A DNA stretch of 64,000 bases from Octopus bimaculoides (GCF_001194135.2 NC_069001.1:3281327-3345326), one strand, 5' to 3'; shown: positions 23,322 to 53,267, counted from the stretch's first letter. The notes: generated by a model from the sequence alone, not told the origin. Made by a program: numbers and translations.

Positions 23322-23729
23322 CTAGTGTACTTGGCAGGCCCGAAACATGATAATCTGTAACAGTATAAACAAGGGAATCATTATCTCAGAACACGAGATC
23401 ATCTTTTCATGGCTGAGTTTCTGGCACAGTAGAGTTTTGAATATAAAGATCAGCATGACAACTAGCAGAGATGAGACCAGTCGAATGCCGGCTGGACGTA
23501 GCAAGTCCAGTTCTTTTATAGTTCGGATGAACACGATGATGATGAAGTAAGCATCGATGGCGTCGATGGCGAACATGGGTGCAAACACCATCCACCACGA
23601 CGTATCCATCACGCGTTCGTACTTCAGTGCAGCCATTATAGAGAAGACAAACACCGCTATCAGGTGCATCCAGATCTCAAAGGCCGTCAGACCAATCCAT
23701 TGTACAAGTTCTCGTAGAGTGAAGAGCAT
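23322..23729 (-). CDS. TMEM203: Transmembrane protein 203, 135 aa, uninterrupted CDS
   Basis: MLFTLRELVQWIG...LLCQKL...PLFILLQIIMFRACQVH aligns end to end with recalled human TMEM203 (MLFSLRELVQWLG...LLCQKL...PLFILLQLLMIRACRVN). ATG at 23729 has A at -3. The ORF-track start at 23789 is a GTG, not an ATG. Confidence 0.95.
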   Translation of the reverse strand: MLFTLRELVQWIGLTAFEIWMHLIAVFVFSIMAALKYERVMDTSWWMVFAPMFAIDAIDAYFIIIVFIRTIKELDLLRPAGIRLVSSLLVVMLIFIFKTLLCQKLSHEKMISCSEIMIPLFILLQIIMFRACQVH

Positions 23730-24451
23730 GATGGTAGTGGTAGTGGTGGTGGTGGTGGTGGTGGTGATGGTGCTGAAGTAGACATTCACGGTACCGACAG
23801 CTGCAATACAGCAAGCTTGGCTGAACGGCAGGCGGTTGTCTCGTTAACGATGAAATCTGCATGTAGGCAACGGGCTGCTACCACCCCCGACACGAAAGTG
23901 TTGGTGGTAGTATGGTTCTGATCGGCTTAAATTGTAGATACTAGTTGTTTTATTATTTTTTTTTTGTTTTTCTGTGATTTTTTTTTAAAGATTGTTTTTG
24001 TTGTTGTTGTAGTTGTTTTGGTTGTGATTCATGTGGGTTCTTTTCCTGAAGTAATCCTTATTGTTAGGTTTAGAAGTCCTGGTGACATGAGTGGAACTGA
24101 CTTTGGTGTGCCACGTAGACATTAGATCAGAGCAGGTAGATTCCATATCCCTGAGCCAATGACAACATTCTAGGTGCACCTATGGAATATAGAAAAAGAG
24201 AGTAAATGTTAGCACAGGACACATGATGGGAAGGGAACAAGGTTTGCTGAGTAACAAATGGTAGTGGTGGTGGTGATGGGGAGAGTGAAGCCCAGGAGGG
24301 AAAGAGTAAAGAAATCAGGGCTTCAAAGTTGAGAGGAGATGGGATGAAGTGCAAGGGGGACAAGAAAGGATGAGATGAAAGGGGAGAGAATATGGTGAGA
24401 GATGACACAGGATGGATAGGGAGAGGATGTGATGAGACAGTATGAGTAGGA

Positions 24452-49600: not shown

Positions 49601-52600
49601 GCAAATCCGGACATTCCTGTGATAATGGTTGGACCAGGTAAGATAGATATATTCACAACCATTTGTCATTATTTTATTACGTATTTTTATTTATTCATAT
49701 ATCAGTGGTTCATAATTAAGGCAGCTAATTAGTACAATTGTTACAGCAAGGACAGATTGTTTTGTGGTTATTATCCTGGCTCTGAATTCAAATCTTATAG
49801 AAATCAACTTTGCTTTTCATCCTTTTGGGGTTGATGAATAAAGTACCAGTTCTGTACTAGGATCAATTCTTCTCTTTCTCTCAACCATTTTTCTATCTAT
49901 CACTCTCTTTCTGGAAGAAATTGGCTCCACCAGATCCAAAGTTGTTCAAGATATGTTATATTTTACAACAGTGCCTCTCCAATTCTATCAAAAAGTCGAG
50001 GGCCTAAAGGAGGATGAAGTTTATATTATAGTATAATTGTGATGACTTATTGGACAAGATCTTGTATTACTGGTTAATAAGTCATGAATTCAAAAATGCT
50101 GTGTACATTTCATGATGTTACTCAATAAAACATTTCCGTCTATCTACTTTGTAGACATATATATAATTTCTCTGTTTTACATTCAGTTTCTCCAATACAC
50201 AATTAATTTCTGAAACCCATTAGCACTATTACTACTTTCACCTTGATGTCATGCACATTTCAACTTGTCCTCAGCTTTCTCTTATATATTTTGGCTTGCA
50301 CTCAGGTTATATGACACCCTCTCTTAGGCTGCTATATCGTTATAATACATTAACCAGCCTATCCTTCACATGCAACTGTCTCTCAAATTACGTGACATAT
50401 TGTTGAAACTGATCCCTACTTGACATGAAATTTCAATGGAATTGAATGCCAGCTCCTGGCAGGGCTTCCCATGTTGAACAGGTTAAAGGATAGAGGTCAG
50501 ACTAATACTGGTTTCGAATAACTTTGTCCTTAAGTATGTGTATATATGAATATAAGTATATGTATCTGTATATATATGTGTGTGTGTGTATATTTATATA
50601 CATTTATATGTATGTGTTTACACACACACACACACACACACACTGACAAACACATATCATTAATCTTTTTCTCTTTTTACATAACAACTGACCTCTACAT
50701 GACATAGAATTTCCCAGGATTTGCACCCTGTGACATCTCTCAGATTGCCCACATGTTATGTGAACATACATTCTTTAGTCTGTACCTTCAAATTTACATT
50801 GCATGCTCCTTAAAGTGATACATTGTTCAGACTGTCCTTACGCCACACAATACAATGATCCAATTGTCTTTGCTGTCCTTCAGGCTGACCCCACTTTTGC
50901 TATCCGAACTTAGCTTAGTGATTTACTATTTGTTTACAGGAACTGGTTGTGCCCCTTTCAGGAGTTTCATTCAAGAAAGAACATCACAGAATATTGGAGG
51001 TGAGTTATACTTAACCAGGCGGGGTCCCAGGAATCTTTTGAATGGAGGGCAGAAGGTCAGAAGGGAATACAATTCCAGGAGAAAAGGGCATAATAATGTT
51101 ATTTAGAAGGGTGCATTTCTTTCCTTGAAGGGATCACATGCTCCTCAGTCCCCACTTGGGTCCACAGAAAACTCATGCTTTATGTTCAACACACTGACTT
51201 ACTTAAAGCCTTCACTTCCAATAGAGCATAGGCCATTGATGATCCTTCTCCACTGTTGTTGACTCTGGGCTGTCCCTTCTACTTCTCTCAAGCTGGATCC
51301 TTGGTTTCTCAGCTCTTCCTCATTGTCCTGCCTTCCCTAAGGGATGGCCTTCCTCTCCTAGTTCTTGTTGCTTTTGAATTGTCATCAACACTTCTGTTAT
51401 TTTGGCAGGGTGTTGGCCCTATATAAACCCATTTTTACCTCTGGGAACAGGTGGTCAGTATTAGTCTGGCCTAAGGTGGTGAGCTAGCGGCATCATTAGC
51501 ATGCTGGACAAAATGATTAGTGGCATTTCGTTTATGCACAAACACACTAATAAAAACACGTCATTAATCTTTCATTTTCTCTTTTAATTTTTCAGAAACT
51601 TATATTTTCTTTGGCTGCAGAAATCAGAAGAAAGATTATTTTTTTCAGGAAGAATGGGAAAAACTTGAGCAATCAAATCTTCTTCATGTATTTCCAGCAT
51701 TCTCTAGGGACCAGGTAAAAATGACATTTCTCTTCAGTTTTTTCACCATTTTGTTCTTTGAATTGTCATTACTCTTTTAAAAATATCATAAATTAGCAAC
51801 TAAGATTTTAATGGAAATATTGGTTTCAAATTTTAGCACAAGGCCAGCAAGTTCAGGGAGGGGGGAAAGTCTATTACATCACCTCCAGTATTCACCTGGT
51901 ACTTATTTTATCAACCCTAAAAGGATGAAAGACTAAGTTAACCTTAATGGAATTTGAACTCAGAACGTAAAGACGGATGAAACGTTGCCAAGCATTTTGC
52001 CAGTTCTGTCAGCTAACTGCCTTAATAATCCTTTCTACTAAAGCACAAGGCCTGAAATTTTAAGGGAGGAGGCACTTCAATTATATTGACCCCAGTGCTC
52101 AACTGGTAATTATTTTATTAAAGGATGAAAGACCAAGAAGTCCTTCACTTCAGGTTAGTATTACAGTATGTAAGAGTTACTTAGTAGATGGGGTGGGGTA
52201 GAAGCATGAAAGTAATAAGCGGGGAAGTGAGGAAAAAAATTGTCTTTTATTACTAGAAATATGATTCTCTCTCCCTTATTTCTCTCTCTCTCTCTCTTAC
52301 TCACTCAATCACTCTCTCGTATCTCTCCCTTTTATTTATTAGCTTTCTCTTCCTTTCACTCACTCACTCATCTGTTTTTCTCACTCCTACACAGGAAGAC
52401 AAAGTCTACGTCCAACATGTACTACTGAAACAGAAAGCTTTGGTGTGGAATCTGTTGGAGGTAGAAAAGGCTTATTTCTATATTGCTGGGTAAGTTGTTT
52501 TCTCCAGATATTCTGGGACTGAATGAGAAATATTTTTACATTGCTAGGTTAAGTTCGCTCCTCCAGATATTCAATGACAGGATGGGAAATCTTGTTATTG

Positions 52601-53267
52601 AACCCCATATCATCTGTGGTCCAGTTGTACTGGACCACAGCCTGCACCCATTTGAGCGAAATTTAGCTGCAATTTTTAGCAGGTCAAACAACAGAAGCAT
52701 TGATGACAGTTCAACACCAACAAAGCCTGGGAGTAGAAGGCCTTCCCTTGGGGACAACTCAGAGTCAAGAACAGTGGAGAAAAATCTTTGGTGGCCTCTG
52801 CTTCATAGGGAGTGAAGGGCTTAAGTATGATGTACAACAGCATTGTTATATCTGATGTATAACAGCCTTGTATGATATATATCAATAATGATGTATGGGT
52901 GTATATTAGCTGAACATAATGAGTTTGAAGAGAATGACTTAAAAGATTTCATAAAATGATTTTTATTTCCAAACAAGAATTACAAAATTAAAAATTTTTT
53001 TACAAAAATGGTAACGCAAAATAATAATAATAATAAAAATAATAATAAAAATAATAATAATAATAATAATAATAATAATAGGTAAAAAATATTTATAAAA
53101 AATTGCTTGTCTGTGATTTCAGGAACGCCAACCAGATGCCAAATAATGTGCGGGATGCTGTCGTTGAAATAGTCGAAACAGAAGGAGGAAAGTCAAAGAA
53201 TGATGCCGACGAATATGTAAAATATCTTGAACAGACCAAACGATACCAAGTTGAATGTTGGTCTTGA
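40615..53267 (+). CDS. NDOR1: NADPH-dependent diflavin oxidoreductase 1, 586 aa, 15 coding exons
   Basis: Exons 40615-40755, 41258-41335, 41675-41772, 42534-42632, 43553-43654, 44465-44644, 44951-45072, 46106-46278, 47120-47167, 47922-48029, 49445-49637, 50940-50999, 51596-51714, 52395-52489 and 53123-53267. All are GT-AG and in phase, total 1761 nt. Motifs: [79 protein letters not shown], and C-terminal YQVECWS. Confidence 0.96.
45368..45565. repeat. (TTG)n microsatellite, ~200 bp with an internal 10-N gap
   Basis: Directly visible, lying between SINE family B copies. Confidence 0.95.
46436..46653. mobile_element. Mariner-derived MITE, copy 1 (NDOR1 intron 8)
   Basis: TIRs CGAGAAGATGCTGAAAAGTTCCTGACTTT / AAAGCCAGGAACTTTTCAGTACCCCCCTCG, flanked by TA. 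Confidence 0.8.
48080..48340. repeat. Degenerate (CAT)n triplet tract
   Basis: Directly visible in NDOR1 intron 10. Confidence 0.9.
48880..49275 (-). mobile_element. RTE-tail-derived repeat with (CAT)n tail; other copies near 1862, 12225, 20935, 39305 and 42845
   Basis: Shared block CATCATCATTTAAC(G/A)TCC..CATGCTGG(C/T)ATGGGTTGGAC..GGCTGGATG(C/A)CCTTC..CCAACCAC. Confidence 0.7.
51201..51370 (-). mobile_element. RTE LINE extreme 3' end
   Basis: Reverse complement of 52750-52826-like sequence (..CAGAGTCAACAACAGTGGAGAAG..GAAGTGAAGGCTTTAAGT). Confidence 0.6.
51821..52024 (-). mobile_element. SINE family B copy in NDOR1 intron 13
   Basis: TGGTTTCAAATTTTAGCACAAGGCCAGCAA...GGATGAAAG...GAATTTGAACTCAGAAC. 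Confidence 0.75.
52700..52826 (+). mobile_element. RTE LINE extreme 3' end
   Basis: Frame [26 protein letters not shown] resembles the RTE C-terminal AQDRxxWRxLVxGLC motif. Confidence 0.6.

Follow-up and report, generated by a model that had tools for sequence, protein, structure and literature searches.

A divergent TMEM203–NDOR1 gene pair in Octopus bimaculoides, probably inherited from the common ancestor of bilaterians

The genes TMEM203 and NDOR1 lie side by side in Octopus bimaculoides, on opposite strands and with their 5' ends facing each other, in a 64,000-nucleotide stretch of the genome (NC_069001.1:3281327-3345326 of GCF_001194135.2; hereafter the window, from whose first letter octopus positions are counted) that is identical to CM046621.1 of assembly GCA_001194135.2. 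Since Vertebrata, Cephalochordata, Hemichordata, Mollusca and Brachiopoda all contain this divergent pair, parsimony places it already in the last ancestor shared by protostomes and deuterostomes, with several later losses. In octopus both genes are intact and 15.3–16.9 kb apart, and the octopod Argonauta hians carries the same arrangement. An original prediction, made from the sequence of the window alone, had proposed that the two genes are adjacent and divergent as in human, with no coding gene between them, and that their linkage dates back to the bilaterian ancestor. These proposals hold: the pair is linked and divergent in most of the sampled spiralians and deuterostomes (the exceptions being Owenia, Lineus and Acanthaster), and gene calls together with Pfam, Rfam and tRNA scans of 23.8–40.6 kb revealed no intervening gene. 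The likeness to mammals is drawn from the literature. In mouse, Tmem203 lies antisense to and directly upstream of Ndor1 exon 1 (PMC4440627), and in human the two genes are separated by 317 nt (PMC2871058). Altogether, the pair is best placed in a class already known, the conserved ancestral microsyntenic pairs (CAMPs), which number about 600 and are mostly arranged head-to-head.

Distribution and age of the pair

The NDOR1 (or TMEM203) locus with 10-kb flanks was surveyed in eleven other species, in which TMEM203 was sought by tblastn and by hidden Markov model (HMM) search, since this small gene is often left uncalled. Distances were taken from the TMEM203 ATG to the start of the NDOR1 coding sequence (CDS). 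The divergent pair was located in the following species.

Argonauta hians, octopod: TMEM203 at 4210770-4211177 (-), NDOR1 from 4226569 (+); divergent, 15.4 kb apart, no called gene between them.
Crassostrea (protein named C. virginica; assembly GCA_053477285.1), bivalve: divergent, 1047 bp apart; intact but uncalled TMEM203 open reading frame (ORF).
Lingula anatina, brachiopod: divergent, 1606 bp apart; TMEM203 ORF uncalled.
Branchiostoma, cephalochordate: divergent, 284 bp from ATG to ATG.
Saccoglossus kowalevskii, hemichordate: divergent, 7.9 kb apart, with one intronless Rad51-like gene between.
Lottia gigantea, gastropod: divergent, 9.3 kb apart, with adh_short and HSP70 genes between.

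At every locus inspected by coordinates (the window, Argonauta, Crassostrea, Lingula, Lottia, Saccoglossus and Branchiostoma) the orientation is 5'-5'. In addition, consecutive locus tags on the same contig were found in Patella caerulea (SNE40_001375/001376) and Nucella lapillus (ACOMHN_012488/012489), where orientation was not inspected. In many vertebrates both proteins come from a contig of equal size, including a 633-kb scaffold of the frog Nanorana, a match at the level of contigs rather than coordinates. Linked as non-paralogous neighbours in Vertebrata, Cephalochordata, Hemichordata, Mollusca and Brachiopoda, the pair exceeds the minimum of four major metazoan lineages used by Irimia et al. 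(2012). The limit of less than 1 kb by which bidirectional promoters are recognized gives a different division: amphioxus and human fall within it, oyster is borderline (1047 bp), and octopus and Argonauta lie outside. A separate origin of the head-to-head pair in chordates and in lophotrochozoans is barely conceivable, given that the same two non-paralogous genes share the same orientation in at least five phylum-level lineages and that the chance adjacency of a given pair, by our own estimate, is about 1e-4 per lineage at about 20,000 genes.

Published comparisons place this distribution in context. A catalogue of potential bidirectional promoters already lists TM203_HUMAN/NDOR1_HUMAN as no. 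653, with 317 nt of intergenic sequence, in human, mouse and chicken only, although teleosts and Xenopus feature in other rows of the catalogue; the entry carries a Gene Ontology (GO) similarity score of 0 and a low conservation score of 0.00914 (Davila Lopez et al., 2010; PMC2871058 Table S5). The octopus pair consists of the same genes in the same divergent arrangement. In contrast to the amniote-only entry, it is here traced to amphioxus, a hemichordate, molluscs and a brachiopod, and its octopus copy exceeds the 1-kb limit. Irimia et al. described 595 CAMPs, 593 of them traced to a bilaterian origin; these are enriched in 5'-5' orientation and short spacers, and amphioxus and Lottia have kept them well, whereas flies and nematodes show erosion (Irimia et al., 2012; PMC3514665). 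TMEM203–NDOR1 resembles them in being non-paralogous, conserved in 5'-5' orientation and closely spaced in compact genomes, in its presence in at least five major bilaterian lineages, and in its loss from fast-evolving lineages such as insects. It departs from their co-regulated class in its octopod spacer of 15–17 kb and apparently separate promoter zones. Furthermore, metazoan microsynteny is known to survive in coleoids despite genome reorganization (Schmidbaur et al., 2022; PMC9023564), and the octopus pair is similar to these retained blocks, as an ancient linkage that has outlasted reorganization while its intergenic distance expanded. Neither gene name was found in the searched supplements of Schmidbaur et al. 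(2022), and the literature search returned no paper joining NDOR1 with "microsynteny". The bilaterian depth of the pair is unstated in the literature searched, which excluded the pair list of Irimia et al. (2012).

A pair formerly catalogued only for amniotes is thus extended, by parsimony, to the bilaterian ancestor, as one well-documented case among about 600. Full-length TMEM203 ORFs lie outside the called-gene lists at the oyster locus (8558-8953, minus strand) and at the Lingula locus (7993-8394, minus strand), and the Lingula protein is absent from a collection of 15 billion proteins. Since these ORFs are intact yet uncalled, annotation-based synteny catalogues would under-count pairs involving small single-exon genes. 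The pair is useful as an anchor for orthology and assembly checks, and its octopod version, in which linkage is kept across a 15-kb spacer filled with repeats, could provide a simple test of which trait is conserved, promoter sharing or linkage as such. By itself it reveals no new biology of either protein.

Gene models and assembly continuity

The coding segments of the two octopus genes are as follows.

23322-23729 (-): TMEM203 CDS, single exon, 135 aa plus stop; from the intact ORF, Pfam and database matches.
39078-39080 (+): start codon of RefSeq NDOR1 isoform X1, a 3-nt CDS segment followed by a GT donor; from the annotated CDS and splice model.
40609-40755, 41258-41335, 41675-41772, 42534-42632 and 43553-43654 (+): NDOR1 main coding exons 1-5; from tblastn and splice model.
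44465-44644, 44951-45072, 46106-46278, 47120-47167 and 47922-48029 (+): NDOR1 main coding exons 6-10; from tblastn and splice model.
49445-49637, 50940-50999, 51596-51714, 52395-52489 and 53123-53267, ending in TGA (+): NDOR1 main coding exons 11-15; from tblastn and splice model.

TMEM203 is contained in a minus-strand ORF at 23322-23789, with the conserved start ATG at 23729. Its product matches Pfam PF10269 (Tmemb_185A family; E=2.7e-08, 34.3 bits versus a cut-off of 23.1), and its named best matches are all "transmembrane protein 203" with 99–100% query coverage. These matches are mostly 130–140 aa long (some gene calls are longer) and are not the longer TMEM185 paralogues. Identity to the octopus protein reaches 93% in Argonauta hians, 55% in Lineus, 53% in the termite and 45–48% in vertebrates; at the nucleotide level, octopus and Argonauta are 80% identical over 23321-23768. 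A profile search added Lottia, Patella, Nucella, Pecten, Capitella, Saccoglossus, Branchiostoma and many insects, and the cross-phylum alignment holds 17–18 invariant columns. The possibility that TMEM203 is an unannotated gene in octopus was dropped, the exact protein being present in UniRef/EukProt. For a cnidarian TMEM203, a profile search of 1.84 billion representatives combined with a cluster-name look-up gave only mite and leech among ten picks.

NDOR1 encodes 589 aa in 16 CDS segments joined by canonical GT-AG introns, with its TGA stop codon at 53265-53267 on the plus strand. This splice model translates exactly to RefSeq O. bimaculoides NDOR1 isoform X1; in tblastn with that protein every residue is 100% identical within exons, and mismatches are confined to overruns at exon boundaries. 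The architecture of the RefSeq protein is Flavodoxin (FMN), FAD_binding_1 and NAD_binding_1 in precomputed Pfam assignments, and single exons match Flavodoxin_1 and FAD_binding_1. The flavodoxin match begins at residue 9–10, and the protein therefore has no N-terminal membrane anchor of the type found in cytochrome P450 reductase. Named relatives among the best 120 listed are all NDOR1, at 35–60% identity, and in the FMN domain the human NDOR1 structure 4H2D gives 226.6 bits, whereas isolated FMN domains of P450 reductases reach about 93 bits over the same stretch of residues. These results place the octopus protein with NDOR1 rather than with its paralogues POR, MTRR and NOS. Orthology of both genes was assessed in the forward search direction only, and on that basis both identities appear sound. 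The annotated start at 39078 is doubtful because the Argonauta NDOR1 model starts at the methionine equivalent to octopus position 40615; it could be artefactual, or else an alternative first exon derived from a transposon. A by-eye resemblance to a mariner-type transposase remnant at 38.2–39.1 kb was not confirmed by Pfam even at E≤1.

The region also contains five assembly gaps, each of them intronic or in the spacer, with no exon missing.

31564-31573: gap of 10 N in the spacer; flanks without overlap, and a join that fits the gap-free Argonauta arrangement.
38874-38883: gap of 10 N in the spacer; near-identical copies of a 71-bp direct duplication on its two sides.
43223-43390: gap of 168 N in the NDOR1 intron 42633-43552, inside a TA/CA microsatellite.
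44013-44022: gap of 10 N in the NDOR1 intron 43655-44464, inside a (CT)n microsatellite.
45458-45467: gap of 10 N in the NDOR1 intron 45073-46105, inside a (TTG)n microsatellite.

As the octopus protein was predicted from the same assembly, the comparison was extended to the independently assembled Argonauta NDOR1, with which the octopus exons are collinear. The protein aligns without a break across the gap junctions, which indicates that no NDOR1 exon has been lost. A wrong scaffold join at one of the spacer gaps could in principle have created the octopus adjacency. Two 10-N gaps do lie in the spacer, and the 71-bp duplicate at the second, in which the left flank (38803-38873) matches the right flank (38884-38954), points to imperfect contig merging; it is on account of this duplicate that the second gap is probably an unmerged contig overlap. 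However, a 53-kb stretch of Argonauta hians with zero N, independently assembled, contains the alpha/beta-hydrolase gene, TMEM203, a conserved block, NDOR1 and the coiled-coil gene in the order and orientation of the window, so that all four genes agree at similar spacing. In addition, the piece lying between the two octopus gaps carries a block collinear with the region upstream of Argonauta NDOR1. Continuity of the octopus spacer is supported by this collinear, N-free region, and an assembly artefact is highly improbable.

The octopod spacer and the persistence of the pair

Three features of the interval between the genes bear on how the pair has been maintained, in addition to the interval itself.

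23730-40608 (no strand): repeat-rich spacer with no gene detected; from ORF, Pfam, Rfam and tRNA scans and gene calls.
23401-24000 (no strand): CpG-undepleted zone reaching from the 5' half of TMEM203 to about 270 bp upstream of it; candidate for the proximal promoter of TMEM203.
35601-38200 (no strand): CpG-undepleted zone of 2.6 kb upstream of NDOR1; candidate NDOR1 promoter region.
37571-37894 (+): block collinear with Argonauta by blastn; candidate non-coding first exon of NDOR1.

Measured from the TMEM203 ATG (23729), the spacer is 15.3 kb long if NDOR1 starts at its annotated ATG (39078) and 16.9 kb if it starts at the conserved methionine (40615). At least 30% of it is repeated elsewhere in the window or consists of tandem repeat, a lower bound set by the within-window comparison; matches to multiple sites in Argonauta also support the repeat content. 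Among 72 stop-to-stop ORFs of at least 55 aa in 23.8–40.6 kb, no credible Pfam domain was found, the sole weak match being to GPR180-TMEM145_TM (E=0.0024), and Rfam and tRNA scans of the spacer gave no match. Called genes are absent from 29078-39077 of the octopus record and from the whole corresponding Argonauta interval (15.4 kb); a lineage-specific orphan gene may lie within 23.8–29.1 kb. A by-eye resemblance to a reverse-transcriptase fragment at 31.9–32.2 kb was likewise unconfirmed by Pfam even at E≤1.

The block at 37571-37894 is the only part of the spacer collinear with Argonauta (67% identity over 338 bp in blastn), and its Argonauta counterpart sits 1.1–1.5 kb upstream of NDOR1 in that species. 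At its end, on the NDOR1 strand, the consensus 5' splice donor G|GTAAGT (37887/37888) is conserved with Argonauta; the donor sequence occurs once in the window. The CpG observed/expected ratio is mostly 0.9–2.0 across 35601-38200 versus 0.1–0.3 in the flanks, and a comparable CpG-undepleted zone lies upstream of Argonauta NDOR1. The block and the CpG zone around it are consistent with a non-coding first exon and promoter of NDOR1. At the other end of the spacer, the ratio in 23401-24000 is 0.74–1.04 versus 0.28 for the whole window. Comparison with Argonauta revealed no conserved splice acceptor upstream of the TMEM203 ATG, where the only common sequence is simple repeat of the (CAC/CAT)n type. 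This separate CpG-undepleted zone and the lack of a conserved upstream acceptor suggest that TMEM203 is probably driven by a proximal promoter of its own, some 14 kb away from the NDOR1 promoter. A distal 5' exon of TMEM203 near the NDOR1 promoter was also considered and found unsupported, there being no conserved acceptor upstream and the donor at 37887/37888 lying on the NDOR1 strand. In octopods, the shared-promoter geometry thus appears to be gone.

We consider it probable that two circumstances jointly explain the retention of the pair: promoter geometry and a small target would have kept it in ancestral genomes, and repeat inflation in octopods would have left the linkage unbroken. In compact genomes, start codons 0.3–1.6 kb apart (amphioxus, oyster and Lingula) correspond to a shared or abutting bidirectional promoter geometry. 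A breakpoint within so short a spacer would damage one or both of these housekeeping-type genes, and with a target this small the pair would persist. In octopods, repeats would have inflated the spacer to 15–17 kb, leaving each gene with its own promoter zone (23.4–24.0 kb and 35.6–38.2 kb) and an adjacency and orientation that were simply never broken. We infer both the promoter positions and the part played in retention by promoter sharing or a small target.

Several observations weigh against this explanation, among them the species in which the two genes were not found together.

Owenia fusiformis, annelid: TMEM203 absent from the 10-kb flanks of NDOR1.
Acanthaster planci, echinoderm: TMEM203 absent from the 10-kb flanks of NDOR1; its upstream neighbour is a copper-transporter (Ctr) gene.
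Nematostella vectensis, cnidarian: TMEM203 absent from the 10-kb flanks of NDOR1.
Zootermopsis nevadensis, insect: NDOR1 absent from the 10-kb flanks of TMEM203, which follows Rpp20.

The contigs carrying the two genes of Lineus longissimus differ in size, so the genes are unlinked in that species. As the two genes were not seen as a pair in these five animals, any constraint is not absolute; the insertions in Lottia and Saccoglossus and the 15–17 kb octopod spacer further imply that close apposition of the promoters is dispensable. Moreover, a search of the spacers of seven species for common promoter motifs, covering shared 8-mers and the motifs NRF1, ETS/GABPA, YY1, ZNF143, Sp1, CRE, E-box and CCAAT, yielded only AT-rich 8-mers. 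Of the original proposal that the microsynteny is under constraint, the deep conservation stands, and the constraint itself is an interpretation for which short spacers, also being small targets for breakage, offer another account.

It is accordingly possible, rather than likely, that the pair is ancestral and was never under selection: a spacer of about 0.3–1.5 kb in the ancestor would have been a tiny breakpoint target, and octopod retention a passive carry-over. Such neutral persistence would agree with the loss of the pair in about one third of the sampled lineages, including the fast-evolving insects, with a spacer that tolerates inserted genes and 15 kb of repeats, and with the lack of a conserved cis motif and the GO similarity of 0. 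Against it stand the properties of conserved 5'-5' pairs as a class, which surpass matched controls in co-expression and in intergenic conservation and contain fewer insulators (Irimia et al., 2012; PMC3514665), as well as the survival of this pair through the large reorganization of coleoid genomes (PMC9023564) and the keeping of its orientation even after insertions. On this evidence, selection and neutral small-target persistence cannot be separated. An unlikely reading is that selection acts on the linkage itself instead of on a shared core promoter, through a longer-range regulatory or chromatin unit or through a functional coupling of TMEM203, with its role in calcium handling by the endoplasmic reticulum (ER), to the electron transfer that NDOR1 performs in cytosolic iron-sulfur assembly. 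This reading arises because adjacency and divergence were kept through the octopod repeat expansion and through the insertions in Lottia and Saccoglossus; if it were true, octopods would be a natural experiment uncoupling promoter sharing from linkage. Less credible still, and very doubtful, is that the two products serve a common process needing coordinated expression. The deep conservation of linkage is the only direct point in its favour, together with the precedent that some conserved 5'-5' pairs are functionally related, for instance HSPD1–HSPE1, whose products are functional partners with demonstrated promoter sharing and co-expression (PMC3514665). TMEM203–NDOR1 is like that pair in being ancient, divergent, long retained and very closely spaced, and unlike it in having no known functional relationship or shared pathway (GO similarity score 0; PMC2871058). 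The TMEM203 knockout left Ndor1 protein normal, and the authors treated the neighbour as unrelated (PMC4440627); several phyla have, in addition, separated the genes without losing either. The functional link once suggested between an ER/lysosomal membrane protein and the iron-sulfur (Fe-S) assembly reductase consequently finds no support.

Neighbouring genes, insertions and repeats

In the Saccoglossus spacer, the inserted gene is an intronless member of the Rad51 family encoding 357 aa (locus 7437-8510, minus strand), and the Lottia spacer contains a short-chain dehydrogenase gene and an intronless HSP70 gene (locus 3309-4117 and 6051-7964, plus strand). The intronless inserted genes of both species look like retrogene-type insertions. 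In the termite, TMEM203 begins 30 bp past the end of the gene for Rpp20, an RNase P/MRP subunit, on the same strand (locus 8311-10411). In JGI sources, two proteins resembling TMEM203 bear the name "ribonuclease P/MRP protein subunit RPP20". In insects, Rpp20 may have taken the place of NDOR1 as a dicistronic-like partner; in Drosophila, Rpp20 and CG33932 presumably have a similar arrangement.

On the far side of octopus TMEM203, and tail-to-tail with it, lie exons of an alpha/beta-hydrolase gene (11703-13269, plus strand; Pfam Abhydrolase_6 / Abhydrolase_1), which we take to be ABHD14-like. Argonauta has the same hydrolase neighbour in the same relative orientation (locus 16906-20408), with collinear exon matches. 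Downstream of NDOR1 and convergent with it is the 3' part of a large gene (about 59600-64000, minus strand) with coiled-coil-like ORFs, whose called product of 1879 aa belongs to no Pfam family; blocks at 60310-60442, 60822-60964 and 62022-62167 are collinear with Argonauta.

CpG is strongly depleted across the window as a whole; the few undepleted islands occur at 1-1000, 7501-8000, 16001-16500, 23401-24000, 35601-38200 and 53001-53500, and may mark promoters or other unmethylated regions. A short interspersed element of about 50–100 bp recurs on both strands, for example at 9737-10257 (in tandem), 17553-17615, 32584-32684, 34684-34777 and 55374-55425, and matches one Argonauta site (about 4242350-4242460) at 75–91% identity. 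A second repeat family (for example 39314-39461, 1866-2031 and 20929-21081) matches many Argonauta positions, and both families look like octopod-wide repeats of the short interspersed element (SINE) type.

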